From the sequence record OP991903.1: a DNA stretch of 64,000 nucleotides; one strand, given 5' to 3'. This document shows positions 45,641 through 61,920 of this stretch, one piece after another; the stretch's first letter is position 1, and every line of letters begins with the position of its first letter. The position numbers and the translations under genes are program-made. The notes below the pieces were generated by a model. It saw nothing but the letters and a program-made list of their open reading frames with translations, was not told the origin of the DNA and did no database searches.

Positions 45641-48118
45641 ATGGCTTACCGGATAACCGAATCCGAGGTAGTGAAAAACAAACGTCTGATGCTGAATGCT
45701 GTCAGCCGCATCCTTTACCGTCCCCAATCTCCGTATCAAGTGATTGTTGGAAAGAATGGTTCGGGTAAGAGTACACTCCTCAAAATGCTGACGTCATACA
45801 ACCCCGAGGCAGGGGACTTTCATAAACAAGGATTCATGCGTACAAAAATACACGCAAATGAATCCGACTACGAAATAGTCGCCGAAGCCGCAGGTAAAGG
45901 CGTGCGTTACTCGTTTAAAAAGAACGGACGGGAATTGAACGAAGGCGGTACCCGTACCGTCCAGCGGGATTTGTACGCCCTGGAATTTAACTACACCCAA
46001 GACGTTCACGAAATCCTCACCGGGGAAATTCGTTTGACACGCCTGGGGCCTGCGAAACGTCAGGAGTTGTTCTCCCGTATTGGCGGAACCGACGTTACGT
46101 TTGCGTACAAGGTCTACAACCGCCTGAAAGGGAAGTTGCGTGATGCGGTCGGTTACAAACGCGGGCTGGAAGAGTCTCTGGTGCAGCGCCAGACCCGTGA
46201 TATCTCCGAAGAGGAGCACGAAGTCCTCAAGCAACGCCTTAAAGGCTACCAGGACACGGTTACAGAGCTTCTACAAGAGTACCGACCTGATATTGAGGAC
46301 AAACATGCCGATGCCTTAGAAGCGATTGTAGCGCGTCTGGAGACCATCGGGGATAAAGCACTGGAGCACGGGAAGAAGTTAATCCCGGACGCACCTCTCG
46401 ATGCGACGAACCGTGACATGTACACGGACCGTCTGGGTGGACTGCAACTGGAGTACCAGGAGTACGCCACCAAAGAGAAAGCGTATCAGGAACAGTACGA
46501 TTCTCTTAACACCACCCTCGAGCAGTTGGTCGGTGACGGTTCCGTGGATAACCTGGAAGAAGAAGTCCGCCGGTTGGAGCAACAGTTGGTGAGCTTCCGT
46601 AATGTCACCTGGTTCCAACCGGGGATGGAGTACCCTAACCCGGAAGCGGCGTGGGATTCCATCAGTGCCATTCTCCCGTCTCTCCAGGATGCATTGTTCA
46701 ACCTGCCCGTTAATGCCGATAATCAGTACAACGCCAATGCGTTGCACGAAACGAACCAGTCGTTGTCTCGTGGTCGCTCCTTGCTCTCCAAGGTGGAGAA
46801 TGAGATTGCACAAGCCGAGGCACGACTGCACCACCTCAATGAAGAACATGACGCGAAATGCCCGAAGTGCGGTTACTCCTCGAATGAAGAGAAACGCGCC
46901 TCAGAGGCCCGTGTGCTCACCGAGAAGTTGGGAACCATGCGAACCCAACGGGAGACCTACGGAAAGCGTCTGGTAGAGCTGGAAGAGCAACAAGGGAAGA
47001 TTACCGAGTGGATTCGTGCGTATGAACGCGTGATGTCTTTCGAACAGTCGAACCCTAGCCTCAAGTTGTACTTCAGCACCCTCTTCCATGCCGCTGACAT
47101 CATGAAGAGTCCGATGCTTCTGGTGTCGATTGCCGGTAACCTGGCGGTGGACTTGGAGCACCATGCACAGTACGCCAAACTCTCCCGTGAACACGCGGAC
47201 AAAGAGAAACTCTTGTTGACCTTGCAGGAAAAGGACATCAAGGGGACTGGTCAGTTACGGGCACGGATGGAACAGCTCAGTAAACAGATTGAGGATGTGG
47301 TCTACGCTCGGGTGTACCTCCACGAATTGATTAAGCGCGACCAGGCACGTCTGGAACAAGCCGATACATACAGTCGCTACGTGGACAGTCTGACGGGTCA
47401 GGTAGAAGCATTAGGGGGAGATGTTCAGGTTGCACTGGAAGCCATGTTCAACCGTATCCGTAAAATTGCTATCGAGGATTTACAGGGGTGGATTGGGACG
47501 CTCACCAAAGAGCTGAACGATGTCCACACCAACCGCGAAGCCATTAAGGATGCGATGGAACAGATTCGTCTGGAGGAGGAGAAGATTGCAGGGTATAAGT
47601 TTGCGATTGAAGGACTGTCGCCAGCAAACGGTCTGATTGCCAAACACATGACCGGTGCCATCAATAACTTCATCAACGAGATGAACAGTATCATCCGCCA
47701 GATTTGGACCACACCGCTGGAAGTGATGCCGTGTGGGTTCGATGACAACGCGGAACTGACGTACGTGTTCCCAGTAGTGGTAAACGAAGATGACAGTCAC
47801 CCGGCAAAGGACGTGAACCAATGTTCCGATGGCCAGGTGGAAATCATCGACTTCGCTTTCAAGGTAGTGGCGTTGTTACAGCTGGGTCAGGAGGGAGCAC
47901 CATTACTCCTGGATGAAACTGACCGTCCTCTGGAAGTGGCCCACAAGACCAGGCTCATGAACTACGTTAAGGAACTCATCGAGAATAACGTCTTCTCGCA
48001 AGTGTTCCTGATTAGTCACCATGAAGCAGCATGGGGTGCGTTACCTTTCCACGACGTATTGGAAGTGGGTCTGCACAAATCCCATCCGGATTACAACAAA
48101 GTAGCCCAACTCGCTTGA
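45641..48118 (+). CDS. sbcC: SbcC/Rad50-like ATPase (phiKZ gp165-like)
   Basis: GKNGSGKST Walker A, coiled coil, CPKC zinc hook, CSDGQ signature, LLLDE Walker B. Confidence 0.92.
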   Translation: MAYRITESEVVKNKRLMLNAVSRILYRPQSPYQVIVGKNGSGKSTLLKMLTSYNPEAGDFHKQGFMRTKIHANESDYEIVAEAAGKGVRYSFKKNGRELNEGGTRTVQRDLYALEFNYTQDVHEILTGEIRLTRLGPAKRQELFSRIGGTDVTFAYKVYNRLKGKLRDAVGYKRGLEESLVQRQTRDISEEEHEVLKQRLKGYQDTVTELLQEYRPDIEDKHADALEAIVARLETIGDKALEHGKKLIPDAPLDATNRDMYTDRLGGLQLEYQEYATKEKAYQEQYDSLNTTLEQLVGDGSVDNLEEEVRRLEQQLVSFRNVTWFQPGMEYPNPEAAWDSISAILPSLQDALFNLPVNADNQYNANALHETNQSLSRGRSLLSKVENEIAQAEARLHHLNEEHDAKCPKCGYSSNEEKRASEARVLTEKLGTMRTQRETYGKRLVELEEQQGKITEWIRAYERVMSFEQSNPSLKLYFSTLFHAADIMKSPMLLVSIAGNLAVDLEHHAQYAKLSREHADKEKLLLTLQEKDIKGTGQLRARMEQLSKQIEDVVYARVYLHELIKRDQARLEQADTYSRYVDSLTGQVEALGGDVQVALEAMFNRIRKIAIEDLQGWIGTLTKELNDVHTNREAIKDAMEQIRLEEEKIAGYKFAIEGLSPANGLIAKHMTGAINNFINEMNSIIRQIWTTPLEVMPCGFDDNAELTYVFPVVVNEDDSHPAKDVNQCSDGQVEIIDFAFKVVALLQLGQEGAPLLLDETDRPLEVAHKTRLMNYVKELIENNVFSQVFLISHHEAAWGALPFHDVLEVGLHKSHPDYNKVAQLA

Positions 48119-48122
48119 GGTC

Positions 48123-48130
48123 TATATTAC
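48123..48130 (+). promoter_or_regulatory. early promoter TATATTAC
   Basis: ggtcTATATTAC. Confidence 0.75.
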
Positions 48131-48163
48131 TCAAGCGAGAACCTTAACTAAAAGGATTGTGTC

Positions 48164-48466
48164 ATGATAGCTAACCATCTGGTTGTCCCGTTCATCCTCC
48201 GCGATTTTGAAAGTGACGTGGAGTACCTGAAACTTCAGGAAAAGAAAACAAAGATGATTGCAGCGGGAAAACACCGCACGACGGAAACGTACGGGGGTAA
48301 ACTCTATTACGTCTATACCCCTGAATTCATCGAACTGAATAACGCCCTGCTGACCTTGGAGGGGTTACGTAACTGGGGCGGCGGTGACCAGCACTACCGT
48401 CTCCTGACAGAAAAAGAGCGGGCGAATACAGTGGTTCTTAACCTAGGTGGCAAGGAGAATGCATAA
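48164..48466 (+). CDS. early hypothetical protein
   Basis: AAGGA SD, directly downstream of an early promoter. Confidence 0.7.
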   Translation: MIANHLVVPFILRDFESDVEYLKLQEKKTKMIAAGKHRTTETYGGKLYYVYTPEFIELNNALLTLEGLRNWGGGDQHYRLLTEKERANTVVLNLGGKENA

Positions 48467-49059
48467 TGTCAGATAACTTCGAAATGCCCAGTGATGATGT
48501 CTTACGTGAGGCGCAGCGTCGGGAAAACAACTTCTGGAAACATGCCCTCCCTTACTGGATGGAAAATTGCTTAGGCGTACCCTCCTCTCCGTTACTCGAC
48601 GGGCGGGTACGGGAGATTAAGCACGTCAGTACATTGGATGGCTTCCTCCGTAACTACCCTGGGTTTGATGAGCCGCCGTATCTCCTCAAGATTGCGCCAG
48701 AGGTAAAGTATCTGGTGAAAGACCCGAAAGAACCGTACCGTCGTTCCCCGAGTCTGGAAGCAATGAAAGGATACAAAGCTGACCCATCGAAATATCCCAA
48801 CGCCATGCCGTGTATCATTCGTCAACCAATACGATTGAACAAGGTCACCTGGCATCTCTTCCCGTTTCGAAACACCACACCGCAAACTACCTTCACCCAC
48901 CCAGAACGCCATCATCAGTACATGCGTAGACTGGAACAGGGTGCGGTAACGTACTACACCGTAGGGGGACCTAACTCAGCATTGCGGGATGTGCTGCTAA
49001 AGAACATGATAACGGGGCTGGAATACAGCGCCCAGAGAGCGTGGTCTAAGCACATTTAA
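48466..49059 (+). CDS. early hypothetical protein
   Basis: TAATG overlap with the upstream gene. Confidence 0.7.
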   Translation: MSDNFEMPSDDVLREAQRRENNFWKHALPYWMENCLGVPSSPLLDGRVREIKHVSTLDGFLRNYPGFDEPPYLLKIAPEVKYLVKDPKEPYRRSPSLEAMKGYKADPSKYPNAMPCIIRQPIRLNKVTWHLFPFRNTTPQTTFTHPERHHQYMRRLEQGAVTYYTVGGPNSALRDVLLKNMITGLEYSAQRAWSKHI

Positions 49060-49063
49060 AGTC

Positions 49064-49071
49064 TATATAAC
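49064..49071 (+). promoter_or_regulatory. early promoter variant TATATAAC
   Basis: gtcTATATAAC, one mismatch to consensus with the same gtc prefix. Confidence 0.6.
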
Positions 49072-49126
49072 TGGGGTGACCAAACCAACTATATCGCAAA
49101 TACCAACACCTGCTTAAGGAAAGAAG

Positions 49127-49546
49127 ATGAACATTGACCAAGTTTTAGAAACTCTGGACCAATTCGTTGCACAACTTCCACGGTCGTTAGGTAACTTTGC
49201 GCTCACCTCAGGAGCAGCGTTAGTCGTCCACGGGGTGCGCGACAATTGTACCGACATCGACATCCAAGTGGACGAGGAAGTCTGGCACTCACTCGAGTGG
49301 CGCTTTGGTGCCAACATGCAGTACGTGCACGGCTTCCCCCAATTCTTATCTTTCACGGTAGGACCAGAAGGGGACGACTACCGTGTGAAGATTACCAACA
49401 CCCGCTTCCATACCGAAATGGTTGACGGCGTCCATGTGCAGACACTGGACAGTATTGCTCGTGCGAAAGAGGTTTGGGGGCGTCGTAAAGATGCCTTCGA
49501 CCTCGAACTTATTGCCGCACACCTGGAAGAAACTAAGGAGAATTAA
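49127..49546 (+). CDS. minimal pol-beta-superfamily nucleotidyltransferase
   Basis: SGAALVVHGVRDNCTDIDI (G.AL..HG..R..T.DxD) and C-terminal K...GRRKD..D. Confidence 0.75.
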   Translation: MNIDQVLETLDQFVAQLPRSLGNFALTSGAALVVHGVRDNCTDIDIQVDEEVWHSLEWRFGANMQYVHGFPQFLSFTVGPEGDDYRVKITNTRFHTEMVDGVHVQTLDSIARAKEVWGRRKDAFDLELIAAHLEETKEN

Positions 49547-49549
49547 TCA

Positions 49550-49903
49550 GTGAACCTGAAAGAAATACAATTCGCGTACCGTAACCTGCAAATGGCATTC
49601 AAGACCAACCTCGGACAGTACGCTGTTGTGCTGCCCGCGGCACATGTCGTGCACGGGGACGGTAACGCTACACTTGCCATGAATATCCAGGTTGACAAAC
49701 GGGTGTTCAGCAAGCTAGTCCAGGAGTTTCGTGGCGGGAATCAAGTGGACCGTGAAGACGGTCCTCACCTGCGTATCGAAACCCGGATGTTTGGGTTGAT
49801 TGACATTGTAGCCGCAAGCTACCCCACCATGATGAAGAATGAGGTTCTGGTGATGACGCCGGAAGCGATTTCTTTAAAGATTGACAGGGCAGGAAACAAA
49901 TGA
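49550..49903 (+). CDS. degenerate (DxD-less) paralog of the upstream nucleotidyltransferase
   Basis: 18/60 ungapped identities with the 49127 protein; D43->A, D45->N. Confidence 0.7.
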   Translation: MNLKEIQFAYRNLQMAFKTNLGQYAVVLPAAHVVHGDGNATLAMNIQVDKRVFSKLVQEFRGGNQVDREDGPHLRIETRMFGLIDIVAASYPTMMKNEVLVMTPEAISLKIDRAGNK

Positions 49904-50571
49904 CAGAAAAAGTGATGATTGACGAAGAACTCGAAGAAGAAACGTACGAGGGTATTGACGTAAGCGAACTCCGCTTACAAATCTACCCATTGGACGCGCT
50001 TCGGGAACTGGGTGCTTTGACGGGCCCGCAATTGATGGAACAGGTCCACTTCTGGTTTAGCAATTACGACCAGATGTGGTACAAGCACGACAGCGAGTTT
50101 ATTTTCGACCACCTCGTCAGAGATATGTTGAAGCTGGGGGTGAACTACCAAGACATCTTCGTTGCTGATACGTCAGACTTCTTCACCATAATTGCCAAAG
50201 ATTCTGGTGAGCAAGGCGGTGCCACCCTGAACAAGGTGTGGAAAGAACGTAAAGGCGATGCGGCTGTCAGCGTGGTTCACCATGCCAGAGCACAGGCGTA
50301 CGGCTGGCTCAACCAACGTCAGAAATTACCGGGGCGTCAAACCCCCGGTAACCTGGTCCACAATTACTTCACAGTGCAACACAACTACATCAAGTTGCTC
50401 CACTGGACGGCGCTGGTACTCTGGTCATTGAAACAACATTGGCCGATGGACGAACGTGTCATCCGTATTGACGCGTTAATGGCGAAACTCAACACTCTCG
50501 ATTTCTCGGTCCGTAACGTGAATCGTCAGTATGAACTGAGTGAAATCACTCAACAACTTCAATCACTGTAA
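49900..50571 (+). CDS. early hypothetical protein
   Basis: ATGA overlap with the upstream gene. Confidence 0.7.
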   Translation: MTEKVMIDEELEEETYEGIDVSELRLQIYPLDALRELGALTGPQLMEQVHFWFSNYDQMWYKHDSEFIFDHLVRDMLKLGVNYQDIFVADTSDFFTIIAKDSGEQGGATLNKVWKERKGDAAVSVVHHARAQAYGWLNQRQKLPGRQTPGNLVHNYFTVQHNYIKLLHWTALVLWSLKQHWPMDERVIRIDALMAKLNTLDFSVRNVNRQYELSEITQQLQSL

Positions 50572-50580
50572 GGATAGGTA

Positions 50581-51216
50581 ATGGATAAGCGCAAGATTTG
50601 TTTAGACCTGGCCGATGTGCTGGAAAAAGAACTGTACACGCAGGCTGAGTGGGAAGAGCGTCTGTCTACCGTATGGTTGCGCCTGAAAGACGATGCGACA
50701 CTGGAACTGTGCGAACGTCTGGTGGAACACGTCATTGAAACCAACGCACCGAAGATTGACATCAGCGCTCTACCGCAAACGGTATCCGGTTTCCGTGAAA
50801 TCACCCGTGTGGTGAAAGACTGGTCTCTGGACTTGCAGCACAAGTACGACTCTCGCGAACTGGATGCTACTATTGGTCTGGTGCAGAGCATGGTCCAGGA
50901 TATGGTAAACAGCGCGCTGAGCAGCGAAGCCAGTCACGCTACCGAAGTGTTCTACGGTACCCGCGTACAGAAAGCCTTCAACCAGTTCTGCCTTGACCAC
51001 AAAGTCTACAGTATCTACCCAGAGCTGCGCCAGACCGTGGTGAATGGCTACTACCCGCATAACTTCGCTGCGGGCAACCGCTGGCGCTTCGGCGGTCCAT
51101 TCGGCTACGGGGCGGTTGATGTTGATTCTCGCGTGTACATCAACTCCCGTCTGCACCAAACGCTGACGGCACTGCGCGATGCTGACAACCCAATGTTCAG
51201 CGAAGAAGCAGAATAA
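50581..51216 (+). CDS. early hypothetical protein
   Basis: AAGGA SD, highly expressed codon bias. Confidence 0.75.
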   Translation: MDKRKICLDLADVLEKELYTQAEWEERLSTVWLRLKDDATLELCERLVEHVIETNAPKIDISALPQTVSGFREITRVVKDWSLDLQHKYDSRELDATIGLVQSMVQDMVNSALSSEASHATEVFYGTRVQKAFNQFCLDHKVYSIYPELRQTVVNGYYPHNFAAGNRWRFGGPFGYGAVDVDSRVYINSRLHQTLTALRDADNPMFSEEAE

Positions 51217-51227
51217 AAAAGCAGAAT

Positions 51228-51260
51228 AAGAGAGGGCTTTCGCCCTCTCTTTTTTTTTTG
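51228..51260. terminator. intrinsic terminator closing the early island
   Basis: aagagagggc-tttc-gccctctctt plus T tract. Confidence 0.9.
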
Positions 51261-51273
51261 TTGTTTTCCTGAG

Positions 51274-51891
51274 TTAAGGATTTTGCTGCTTCTGCTCTAA
51301 CAAGGACTGAAGTTCCGCCACCTTATTCTGCAAGACAGTCGTACGTGCCTGTTCTTGCAACAGCAGGGCATAAGTTGTGGAACGGTTCTTGATAGCCGCA
51401 GTGCGGGCCGCTTCCATAGCGTCGTATTCTTCCCGTGTCATGACCGTACTGCTATCCAGGACGTCAACGAACACTTCCGGGACGACTCCGATAGTATCCG
51501 AGATTACCTCTCCCACTTTCGAGCGTAAAAAGTCCATATTGACATCCATTCGCATGGGTCCAATACTCGCGCTCAATACAAAGTGGCCGACAGCAGGCAC
51601 TGATGAGTCAGGATAAGAAACGACGTAGGTATCCGGGACATTAATGATGCTCCCGTCGTCCCCTTGCAAGACACAAAGGATTGCTCCGGCGGCATTGTCA
51701 GCTTCGTAGTCGCTTTGCTGCAACCCCTTCGGCTGGTAATACGTGACGAACACGTCATTGCCGTTTGCAATCAATTCCCTAAAGGTACGCAGGGCCGTAC
51801 AGGTGTACAAGACCTTGTTGTCCGTTGTCCATGGCATCCGCAGTGTGTACAACCCGCGCATGTTTGGTAACGGCGTGATTCTCGTTGCCAT
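51274..51891 (-). CDS. probable virion structural protein
   Basis: 205 aa, co-oriented downstream of the gp157-like gene. Confidence 0.55.
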   Translation of the reverse strand: MATRITPLPNMRGLYTLRMPWTTDNKVLYTCTALRTFRELIANGNDVFVTYYQPKGLQQSDYEADNAAGAILCVLQGDDGSIINVPDTYVVSYPDSSVPAVGHFVLSASIGPMRMDVNMDFLRSKVGEVISDTIGVVPEVFVDVLDSSTVMTREEYDAMEAARTAAIKNRSTTYALLLQEQARTTVLQNKVAELQSLLEQKQQNP

Positions 51892-51901
51892 CAGAAACCC
51901 C

Positions 51902-53203
51902 TTAGCTCAGAGCAAAGCCTTGCTTAATTGGCACCAGGTACTGCACTGCTCCGACGGTTGTTGTGAGGTAATATACCCCGTCACGTTGCGTACGAGTCAT
52001 GTCAGTCGGTATGATGCTCTGCGGCGTTGCCACCTCGGCGGCCATCAGAAGGGTAATTAACTTCGTGATGAACGTCTGGGTGTCGGGCGGCAGTTTCGCA
52101 AATTCAGCGGAGACCGGCGGTACGTTCGCGTACTTCGGCCACTCGCGGTCGAAGCGGGTATCGGCACCGTAGTTCAACTGGTTCCCGCAACTGAGGAACT
52201 GCAACGACTGATATGAGCAACTTGTAACGCAGAGGTTTGCCGTAATGTGCGCAGGGAGGTAGCCTTTAAAGTACTTCAGGGCATACGTCATCTGGTCCGA
52301 ATACGGGATGGTCGGACTGTAAACCCCAGTCTCCAATGCCTGGTTCGGTAAACTATAGCGGTCCCAGATGGGCACGATGTAGAATTCCGTTGGCGTAAAG
52401 ATTTCCGGTAACACCTTAGCCCATTCGGATTCGGTGTGTTCGGAATTTGCCAGGATGTACGCGCGAATCGCCTCTTTGATGTAATCAATGTTGACGCCAG
52501 CTTGCCCGTTGATAATCGCGGTGAATGGCGCAGGCCAGGTCACGTCCTCGTTATCAATGTCGTGCCAGTTGAAGTTCTTCGTCCAGATGTATGACTGTGG
52601 TTTCTTACCAATCGCAGCCTGCACTTTGGCGTTGTGGCTTTCACTGGTGATGGCCTTGAGCATGGCCAGGACAGCATCACGTTGATTGAAGAATTGGTCT
52701 ACGGGTTCCAGAGCAGGGACAATTCGGAACTCTTTGCCCGGATACTCAGCAAGGAAGTTATCGTTCGCAAACCAGACGAACAGGTCATTCGTTTCGCCGG
52801 AGTTGTTAACCTTAATCTCCATGCTTGCCGGGTAGTAGTAATGACTCTGGAGTAAGATGGGTCCCACAGCAACGAATTCAACGCTGTCGCCGAACTCGGC
52901 GGTCAGTGCCTGCTTCAGGGCAACCGAGTCTTGACCAACTGCGCCCTGAATGGACCGGTCATACAGCCACTGCGAGATGTGAAGAATCGTATCGTAATAC
53001 GTCAACCCGACTTCGACAAGAACATCGTCGCGGCGCGAGTCGATGCTGTGAAATACGACGTTGGAATAGGTGCCCGTGCGATAAGTACCGACTTCGGTAC
53101 TGTACTGGAAACCTATATCTTCCAGCTCACCAATGGTGGCAGTCTTACCGGGTCCGTTGTTTTTGAAGTTGGGGATACCCACAAAACCGTATAAGCTGTA
53201 CAT
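51902..53203 (-). CDS. virion structural protein (phiKZ gp157-like)
   Basis: N-terminal LYGF...NN.PG....IGEL and IF..TEF.IVP.W motifs; synteny with RNase H. Confidence 0.6.
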   Translation of the reverse strand: MYSLYGFVGIPNFKNNGPGKTATIGELEDIGFQYSTEVGTYRTGTYSNVVFHSIDSRRDDVLVEVGLTYYDTILHISQWLYDRSIQGAVGQDSVALKQALTAEFGDSVEFVAVGPILLQSHYYYPASMEIKVNNSGETNDLFVWFANDNFLAEYPGKEFRIVPALEPVDQFFNQRDAVLAMLKAITSESHNAKVQAAIGKKPQSYIWTKNFNWHDIDNEDVTWPAPFTAIINGQAGVNIDYIKEAIRAYILANSEHTESEWAKVLPEIFTPTEFYIVPIWDRYSLPNQALETGVYSPTIPYSDQMTYALKYFKGYLPAHITANLCVTSCSYQSLQFLSCGNQLNYGADTRFDREWPKYANVPPVSAEFAKLPPDTQTFITKLITLLMAAEVATPQSIIPTDMTRTQRDGVYYLTTTVGAVQYLVPIKQGFALS

Positions 53204-61319: not shown

Positions 61320-61349
61320 GGCTAGGTCCTCCTAAAAACGGAACAGGTC

Positions 61350-61357
61350 TATATTAT
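61350..61357 (+). promoter_or_regulatory. early promoter variant TATATTAT
   Basis: ggtcTATATTAT. Confidence 0.55.
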
Positions 61358-61398
61358 AGAATTGACTTCAGCTACTTGTATCACAGGAGTTACACAGA

Positions 61399-61920
61399 AT
61401 GTTAGCAAAAATGTTACGGCGTTACTTTCAATCCCGTCAGTTGAACAAGGCGTACGCCCTACTGGGTGGTATCGACGGGGAGATAGAGGTCAGTCCGGAA
61501 ACCATGCTTATCCTATGGAAAGGGTTAAGAGCACTCCGTCTCTCTGAGGAAGAGTTGCTACTACTGCTCCCGATTCAAGGCGACTTCTATTACCAGGCAC
61601 ACGACGTAGCCGAGCGTTTAGAAAAAGGCACGTTGTATTTCGCCCGCACGGAAGAACCGCCGCGCACTCACTACCCGCCGGAAATCAATTCGAGTTCCCT
61701 ACGCTTTTGGCTGAGCGATAAACAAGGGAGCCACCTGGAAGCCATCTCCTTCTTACTGGAACTTGAGGAACTTATCAAGGACAATGTGGAAGCGATGGAC
61801 CTCTCCCGGGAGACTGAGGCGGAGCACGTGTACAATTACCGTATCGGTGAGATGTATTACGTGTATTGTGACATTATGACCTTCTGCGAGAGTATTCTGC
61901 GGAGGGCTCACTCTACGTAA
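61399..61920 (+). CDS. hypothetical protein
   Basis: AGGAG SD, 173 aa. Confidence 0.7.
   Translation: MLAKMLRRYFQSRQLNKAYALLGGIDGEIEVSPETMLILWKGLRALRLSEEELLLLLPIQGDFYYQAHDVAERLEKGTLYFARTEEPPRTHYPPEINSSSLRFWLSDKQGSHLEAISFLLELEELIKDNVEAMDLSRETEAEHVYNYRIGEMYYVYCDIMTFCESILRRAHST

Follow-up and report, generated by a model that had tools for sequence, protein, structure and literature searches.

A probable minimal nucleotidyltransferase and its degenerate paralogue are encoded side by side in Iapetusvirus jumbo phages

Introduction

What kind of activity is encoded by two small, adjacent phage genes that carry no functional annotation? The genes in question, here called A and B, lie on the plus strand of Erwinia phage vB_Ea277G (OP991903.1), a jumbo phage of the genus Iapetusvirus with a genome of 218.5 kb, from which a stretch of 64,000 nucleotides (nt), referred to as the window, was analysed. 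Gene A (49127..49546) encodes 139 amino acids (aa) from an ATG start, and gene B (49550..49903) encodes 117 aa from a GTG start, with AAGGAG 10 nt upstream. The related phage PhiEaH1 is 93.9% identical to positions 48400-50600 of the window, and all genes in this region are entered as 'hypothetical protein' in both records. The original prediction for this locus took the pair for a nucleotidyltransferase (NTase) of the DNA polymerase beta (pol-beta) superfamily with a catalytically dead twin. We favour, with a probability of roughly 0.55, a reading in which A is a probable active NTase and B a non-catalytic partner that arose by tandem duplication, the two forming part of one co-transcribed unit.

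Results

Protein A is a predicted minimal nucleotidyltransferase

AlphaFold2 models were built from a 33-sequence alignment. The model of A reached a predicted local distance difference test score (pLDDT) of 91.7 and a predicted template-modelling score (pTM) of 0.85, and the model of B reached 90.3 and 0.84. The A model comprises a helix, a beta-alpha-beta-alpha core, a four-strand sheet extension and two C-terminal helices (residues 107-117 and 120-138), and the B model has the same core and stops after a short helix (104-108). Both contain the alpha-beta-alpha-beta-alpha-beta core fold of the pol-beta superfamily. When the models were compared with the PDB using Foldseek, all significant or top matches of either protein were nucleotidyltransferases. 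For A these were TM1012 (E 8e-6, template-modelling (TM) score 0.64), LnuA (2e-3) and ANT(2'')-Ia (1e-2), together with OASL, Pol mu, vaccinia poly(A) polymerase, Pol beta and CCA enzymes. For B they were LnuA (3.7e-4) and TM1012 (7e-3), then JHP933, a CCA enzyme and ANT(2'')-Ia, with MenT1 as a weak match (E 0.08, TM 0.53). MenT and AbiEii structures were not found among the top 50 structural matches of A. Searches of Pfam (E<=10), NCBIfam and PADLOC returned no family match for A or B, a chance-level acylphosphatase match for B being the sole output of these direct searches.

The pol-beta NTase superfamily is defined by the patterns hG[GS], [DE]h[DE]h and a third-strand h[DE]h (Kuchta et al. 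2009, PMC2794190). The first two are found in A, with T-S-G29 at the start of the second helix (28-35) and D43-I-D45-I on the second strand (43-48). Conservation was counted in an alignment of A with 146 representatives of its family, described below. Motif I of A (S28-G29) through the near-invariant G36 and R38 occupies 49208..49243 on the plus strand, G29 being shared by 138 of the 147 sequences, G36 by 137 and R38 by 144. The predicted metal-binding carboxylates of motif II, D43-I-D45 (49253..49261, plus strand), are present in 137 and 131 of the 147. A third segment (49466..49501, plus strand) runs from K114 (127/147), a lysine like that of motif III, to K121-D122-A-F-D125, a '+DxxD' sequence resembling motif IV (D122 146/147, D125 122/147); the C-terminal segment as a whole reads G118-R-R-K-D122-A-F-D125. 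All of the near-invariant family residues (G29, A31, G36, R38, D43 and D122) are kept in A, and other strongly conserved positions of the family are T41, D45 (Asn in 12 members), G101, K114, D125 and a strand motif h-D-h-H. The pol-beta motifs that had first drawn attention to the protein, S28-G29, D43-I-D45 and GRRKD..D, are therefore present as described, and both the model and the Foldseek matches back an NTase fold.

Proteins of the AbiEii/DUF1814 type are defined by motifs I and II, a Lys-centred motif III and a '+DxxD' motif IV, of which motifs I, II and IV proved by mutagenesis of AbiEii to be required for GTP binding (Dy et al., PMC3985639). Protein A carries all four (G29; D43/D45; K114; K121-D-A-F-D125), plus R38 between motifs I and II. 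Given that it has exactly this motif set, we regard A as probably an active Mg2+-dependent nucleotidyltransferase of the pol-beta superfamily, with the caveat of a missing strand carboxylate that is taken up in the Discussion. The ratio of nonsynonymous to synonymous substitution rates (dN/dS) for A was 0.09-0.16.

Protein B is a degenerate paralogue under purifying selection

Several comparisons connect B to A. BLASTP aligned the two proteins with E 3e-7, and a recount of their ungapped alignment over the first 60 aa gave the 18 identities originally reported, including LG, AA, VVHG and IQVD. The PHROGs family phrog_12854 matched A over its full length (E 1e-50) and B over positions 1-108 of 137 (E 1.9e-6), and B matched the hidden Markov model of the family with E 6.6e-8. 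Profiles of the A and B lineages were aligned by hhalign over 107 columns (A 1-112 against B 1-109) with 96% probability and E 3.9e-9. In addition, the structural model of A matched the PhiEaH1 copy of B in BFVD (E 8e-6), and in pairwise searches B matched A only. These comparisons identify A and B as true paralogues.

The residues that would form an active site in A are largely replaced in B. The changes G29P, D43A and D45N and the missing C-terminal KD helix, all named in the original prediction, can be read directly in the translation, and R38 to G, G101 to E and K114 to I accompany them. Specifically, L-P29 stands where hG[GS] is expected and A43-M-N45 where [DE]h[DE]h is expected; the protein ends before the C-terminal helix that carries D122 and D125 in A, and I-D85-I is kept on the third strand. 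As judged from these losses, catalysis of the usual type by B is excluded. The predicted isoelectric point (pI) also differs, being 4.8 for A and 9.05 for B.

B is nevertheless maintained. Its frame is intact in four genomes, and its dN/dS, at dS values of up to 1.6, is 0.10-0.14, a range like that of A; a ratio near 0.1 indicates that B is under purifying selection, and we ruled out a decaying pseudogene on these grounds. B lies directly after A in vB_Ea277G, PhiEaH1 and two further related loci (L008 and L009), separated from it by a 3-nt gap or overlapping it by ATGA. As far as fold, motifs and selection are concerned, the proposed pairing of an enzyme with a pseudo-enzyme is thus well supported.

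The junction between the two genes was also considered as a possible read-through site. A and B share a frame in the window (49544-49552) and in L009 (3995-4003), with TAA and one codon between them; in L008 (4001-4004) B overlaps A by ATGA in another frame. A single gene expressed by read-through of TAA was ruled out because B of L008 lies in a different frame, and, since the in-frame layout is not conserved, we do not take it as a sign of read-through.

The family is large and includes phiKZ-like jumbo phages

An exhaustive profile search collected 977 clusters at E<=1e-3, of which 354 reached E<=1e-10, mostly of 130-150 aa. Cultured members are all phiKZ-like jumbo phages, namely Iapetusvirus, Chiangmaivirus (RSF1 and FLC8), Ripduovirus RP12, FLC1-1B, EL-like phages, RVTF4, D6, Vibrio phage pir03 and Yersinia phage phiR1-37, joined on structural grounds by 201phi2-1, Noxifer and Phabio. 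Metagenomic members lie on contigs of up to ~220-230 kb. A search for related loci with the close alignment returned one contig only, from IMG/VR, whose match to protein A is 100% identical. Across 185,579 representative bacterial and archaeal genomes no relative was found with an EL-type sub-alignment and one narrow peptide pattern, which is weak evidence of absence.

The family has no Pfam model of its own, its BFVD matches are all 'uncharacterized', and PHROGs lists phrog_12854 as 'unknown function'. Seven of the 147 members reach Pfam DUF6036 ('nucleotidyltransferase of unknown function') with E 1e-5 to 2e-3; the two whose scores are known, at 18-22 bits, fall below the DUF6036 gathering score of 23.6 bits, and neither A nor B matches it. 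As judged from these scores, the relation to DUF6036 is distant and not one of membership. AbiEii was not matched by any of the 147 members at E<=0.01, and the MNT models of Pfam (NTP_transf_2 and Polbeta) were likewise unmatched. We found no published functional work on DUF6036, PhiEaH1, vB_Ea277G or jumbo-phage NTases.

Most other phages have a single copy, which is sometimes extended at its C-terminus. The extension comprises ~100-130 aa in pir03 (L004 2995-3816), RVTF4 (L011 2498-3235) and D6 (L012 2498-3250), has no detected similarity to the family, and in pir03 terminates in a strongly basic tail. A fused B-type domain at the C-terminus of the 273-aa pir03 protein was considered and ruled out, since the match to the family is limited to the N-terminal half. 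Three members are fused to a GNAT acetyltransferase and one to GNAT plus NUDIX.

Tandem copies occur outside Iapetusvirus as well. The two copies of FLC8 are both intact and share 45% identity, and EL has an intact ORF120 followed by ORF121, which carries D-L-N and W-x-R, a variant present in ~8 of the 146 representatives. The tandem pairs of Iapetusvirus, FLC8 and EL all combine an acidic first copy (pI 4.7-5.2) with a neutral to basic second copy (6.5-9.4), the family median being 5.85. B-type copies are confined to the Iapetusvirus lineage and its metagenomic relatives, where they invariably stand right behind A. B may have originated from the EL ORF121-type 'D-x-N / W-x-R' subfamily or by a separate duplication.

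A and B lie in a compact unit behind a promoter-like box

Genes A and B are followed by two co-oriented plus-strand genes of 223 aa and 211 aa without assigned function (49900..51216), the first of which overlaps B by ATGA; their order is the same in L008 and L009. Every gap among the four genes is <=10 nt, and the unit ends at a bidirectional hairpin resembling an intrinsic terminator (51228..51251), with a 10-bp stem that includes six GC pairs and T runs on both strands. The 223-aa and 211-aa genes would share a transcription unit with A and B.

In the 67-nt gap before A, 49 nt upstream of its ATG, stands the promoter-like box GTCTATATAAC-N6-G (49061..49078, plus strand). Its pattern, GTCTATATWAY, is found exactly three times in the window, where 0.01 occurrences would be expected; every copy lies 44-66 nt before a plus-strand start codon and is followed after 6 nt by a G. 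The other two, also on the plus strand, are GTCTATATTAC-N6-G (48120..48137), upstream of a 100-aa gene, and GTCTATATTAT-N6-G (61347-61364), in a divergent intergenic region 52 nt upstream of a 173-aa gene at 61399. The box before A is identical in PhiEaH1 over 33 nt (the box and 20 nt around it) while the flanks diverge, and it persists in L008 and L009 although dS has reached ~0.7-1.5. Early promoters of virion RNA polymerases (RNAPs) include AAATATATATTAT-N6-G in AR9, and in phiKZ and phiR1-37 transcription starts 6 nt downstream of an AT-rich element (PMC5312081). By analogy, the box at 49061 is a putative phage promoter of the virion-RNAP type.

In PhiEaH1 the annotated start of gene A (AGX01906.1; L002 4230-4700) lies 51 nt further upstream, giving 156 aa and crossing the conserved promoter-like box; the 139-aa start is common to vB_Ea277G, L008 and L009. 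The 48120 copy, GTCTATATTA, is bracketed by a perfect 10-bp inverted repeat (CTCGCTTGAG / CTCAAGCGAG; 48108-48140) directly after the stop codon of an SbcC-like gene. As the repeat flanks it, this box would lie in the loop of a hairpin, which could be a combined terminator and promoter or a regulatory structure.

An indication of timing comes from the phiR1-37 homologue g077 (L005 2941-3336), the one homologue with expression data, which has its own RNA-seq-verified promoter, gives equal reads early (2-5 min), in the middle and late, and was classed as 'constitutive' (PMC4848604). In the same work it is annotated 'lincosamide adenylyltransferase LinA' under nucleotide metabolism, and its 5' end is covered by the antisense non-coding RNA misc_3. 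Since g077 is present from 2-5 min but constitutive, expression of A and B from the very start of infection is plausible by analogy, but an exclusively early role does not follow from it. Of the 'early operon' that had been proposed, then, the tightly packed unit behind a virion-RNAP-like box stands, and the word 'early' is put in question by g077.

Genomic context

An 825-aa SbcC/Rad50-like ATPase gene (45641..48118, plus strand; phrog_77 E 1.9e-68; SMC_N) is the upstream neighbour that anchors the conserved synteny, and a gene of 822-825 aa of this kind also precedes the NTase family member in EL, L008 and L009. Between it and A are two small plus-strand genes without assigned function, of 100 aa and 197 aa (48164..49059), the second of which is variable among relatives. 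The slot from the 100-aa gene to A (48466-49059) holds 197 aa here, 169 aa in PhiEaH1, 176 aa in L009 and 93 plus 230 aa in L008, and nucleotide identity with PhiEaH1 starts only at ~48847. Downstream of the terminator, a convergent minus-strand gene (51274-51891) is a strong member of DUF7194 / phrog_3241 (E 1e-70) and is followed by a virion structural protein gene (51902-53203). Elsewhere in the window are genes for a phiKZ-type 787-aa major head protein, tail fibres, RNase H and a UvsX-like recombinase. Beside A, where a cognate antitoxin of the AbiEi/MenA type might be expected, lies the degenerate paralogue B; the other neighbours have no family matches, and no HEPN gene was found among the neighbours of A and B.

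Across cultured phages the family gene usually has genes of replication, repair or nucleotide metabolism around it: it follows SbcC in Iapetusvirus and EL, adjoins DNA ligase (EL, RSF1 and FLC8) or DHFR/RNR genes (RVTF4 and D6), and lies near the DnaB helicase gene in RP12 and FLC1-1B.

Discussion

In the mechanism that we favour, the nucleotide-binding centre of A would be formed by four elements: G29; R38 with D43-x-D45; K114; and K121-D122-x-x-D125. B would have arisen by tandem duplication, keeping the alpha/beta core but losing its C-terminal helical segment along with the residues that bind nucleotide and metal, and becoming basic. It would be co-transcribed with A and probably translationally coupled to it, in a unit that would start at a phage-specific promoter of the virion-RNAP type active from the start of infection. 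B is most likely a non-catalytic partner, which would form a hetero-oligomer with A and in it either regulate A or provide a substrate-binding surface. Fold, motifs, paralogy, motif loss, purifying selection and the conservation of both the adjacency and the promoter-like box are shown, and from them we infer the catalytic activity of A, its contact with B and the timing of expression; their interaction, a host target and a role in counter-defence are put forward as hypotheses.

Four observations weigh against this interpretation. A has Y85-R-V-K88 where the family shows h-D-h-H, and so fails to present the carboxylate of the third-strand h[DE]h pattern, the alignment register of this comparison being uncertain by two residues; A itself could therefore be catalytically altered. 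Links to the PDB by sequence only were not significant (E 0.1-0.6), TM1012 reaching 0.11 when A was the sole query and 0.6 when a 10-sequence profile was used; the 147-sequence profile lost TM1012, fusion proteins having inflated the alignment to 832 columns. The timing evidence stems from a distant relative, phiR1-37, in which the gene is constitutive rather than early. Finally, the two intact copies of FLC8 and the mostly single copies elsewhere imply that a dead partner is no general requirement of the family.

The missing carboxylate raises the possibility that neither protein is an enzyme, both being NTase-fold binding proteins with a structural or regulatory role. R86 and K88 stand at the positions of the family Asp (81/147) and His (115/147) and are invariant in the A lineage, and inactive NTase-fold domains are common (PMC2794190). 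However, A keeps every other near-invariant residue, including D43, D45 and D122; the strand position is Ser in 35 of the 147 members (~24%), so the Asp is not essential to the family; and AbiEii-type NTases are defined without a third-strand motif. We consider an entirely non-enzymatic pair highly improbable.

Comparison with known systems bears on what an active A might do. TM1012 of Thermotoga maritima (PDB 2ewr, 2fcl and 4hx0), a putative nucleotidyltransferase and the best structural match of A, would, like DUF6036, be a distant relation of the family. It has a similar size (~160 aa), a DIDIQ-type strand and a D-x-x-D segment near the C-terminus, but its sequence link to A is at the non-significant level given above; having no known function itself, it says nothing on the role of A or B. 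LnuA (4fo1) and ANT(2'')-Ia (4xje, 4wqk and 5cfs) are small (~160-177 aa) two-part NTases with a core and a helical C-terminus, as in A, and LnuA is the second-best structural match of A and the best of B. Unlike these enzymes, to which identity is 14-17% with modest E-values, A lacks the third-strand carboxylate and belongs to a lytic jumbo phage with no resistance context. AbiEii and MenT1-4 (DUF1814) share with A the hG[GS] pattern, a conserved Arg, DhD, the C-terminal Lys motif and the +DxxD pentad (PMC3985639), and A, like them, belongs to a two-gene unit. It differs from them in having no PF08843 or PADLOC match, in being half the size or less, in a motif I-II spacing of 13 rather than 15, and in a partner that is a degenerate paralogue rather than an AbiEi/MenA antitoxin. 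The kinship to MenT, AbiEii or MntA that had been proposed is thus reduced to the motif layout of AbiEii, as the nearest structures are TM1012, LnuA and ANT(2'')-Ia and the Pfam AbiEii and MNT models are unmatched; the link is one of shared motif architecture, not of family membership. For the pairing itself, OAS/OASL and the NF45-NF90 DZF dimers offer a parallel in which selection keeps an inactive paralogue of NTase fold beside or together with an active one. Among the weak structural matches of A and B are OASL and NF90-NF45; these systems are, however, eukaryotic, much larger and homologous in fold only, and a dimer of A and B would be hypothetical.

Two proposals give A a more definite substrate. 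According to the original prediction, A would act early in infection and nucleotidylate a host tRNA or defence protein, much as MenT/AbiEii or MntA do, with B as adaptor, regulator or decoy. The four AbiEii-type motifs, the appearance of MenT1 among the matches of B and the promoter-like box of virion-RNAP type would fit this, and the basic B could offer an RNA-binding surface; moreover, MenT toxins are reported to act on the acceptor stems of tRNAs and to be under the control of partners that bind them (PMC7450476, PMC10435456, PMC11375011). Against it stand the unmatched AbiEii, NTP_transf_2 and PADLOC models, the lack of MenT or AbiEii among the top 50 structural matches of A, the constitutive phiR1-37 homologue, and neighbours that are replication, repair and nucleotide-metabolism genes with no known takeover genes among them. 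A is, at 139 aa, small and strongly acidic in a family of median pI 5.85, so that binding of tRNA by A alone is not favoured. We therefore regard a takeover or counter-defence enzyme as an unlikely explanation. A stronger version of it appears decidedly doubtful: an obligate asymmetric heterodimer of A and B, occurring in phiKZ-like jumbo phages, in which the basic twin would direct the acidic catalytic subunit to a host tRNA or defence protein that is nucleotidylated from the first minutes, a phage-borne, self-regulated and counter-defensive counterpart of the bacterial MenT/AbiEii toxins. If it were true, the acidic-first, basic-second order shared by three phage lineages would point to a two-subunit enzyme of old origin.

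Enzymes that bind cationic substrates typically have an acidic surface, and the acidity of A would suit the other proposal, that of an NTase acting on nucleotides or small molecules in phage DNA or nucleotide metabolism. Such an enzyme would resemble LnuA and ANT(2'')-Ia, which adenylylate small cationic molecules, and B would be a diverged paralogue with a non-enzymatic role of its own and not an obligate partner. These two are the closest characterised structural matches, g077 is annotated as LinA-like under 'nucleotide metabolism', the GNAT and NUDIX fusions are natural ones, and the adjoining DHFR/RNR and DNA ligase genes and nearby DnaB gene are in keeping with it. Yet Foldseek links A to LnuA and ANT(2'') with modest E-values only (2e-3 to 1e-2, at 15-16% identity), no candidate substrate can be named, and the strict adjacency, coupling and complementary charge of A and B argue for a joint function. 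A purely metabolic enzyme with an independent B consequently strikes us as improbable too.

Within the reading that we prefer, of an active A with B as its non-catalytic partner, gene context, the GNAT/NUDIX fusions and the acidity of most members speak no less for a nucleic-acid end, a nucleotide or a small molecule as substrate than for tRNA or host proteins, if not more. We rank a nucleic-acid end, nucleotide or small molecule of phage DNA metabolism first, and a host protein or tRNA, with a role in counter-defence or takeover, second.

The superfamily to which these proteins belong is already well known; what is new is an uncharacterised member family and a lineage-specific pseudo-enzyme partner, and the present gain is an advance in annotation (fold, motifs, family and pairing), not a demonstrated new mechanism. 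The A/B pair defines a family of ~980 clusters of minimal NTases, which share the active-site layout of AbiEii/MenT at about half their size. Were host molecules its substrate, the enzyme would represent a novel activity of phages in takeover or counter-defence; were DNA ends or nucleotides its substrate, the DNA metabolism of jumbo phages would gain a further step. In both cases, Iapetusvirus offers a clean example from nature of a phage enzyme accompanied by a pseudo-enzyme that selection maintains.

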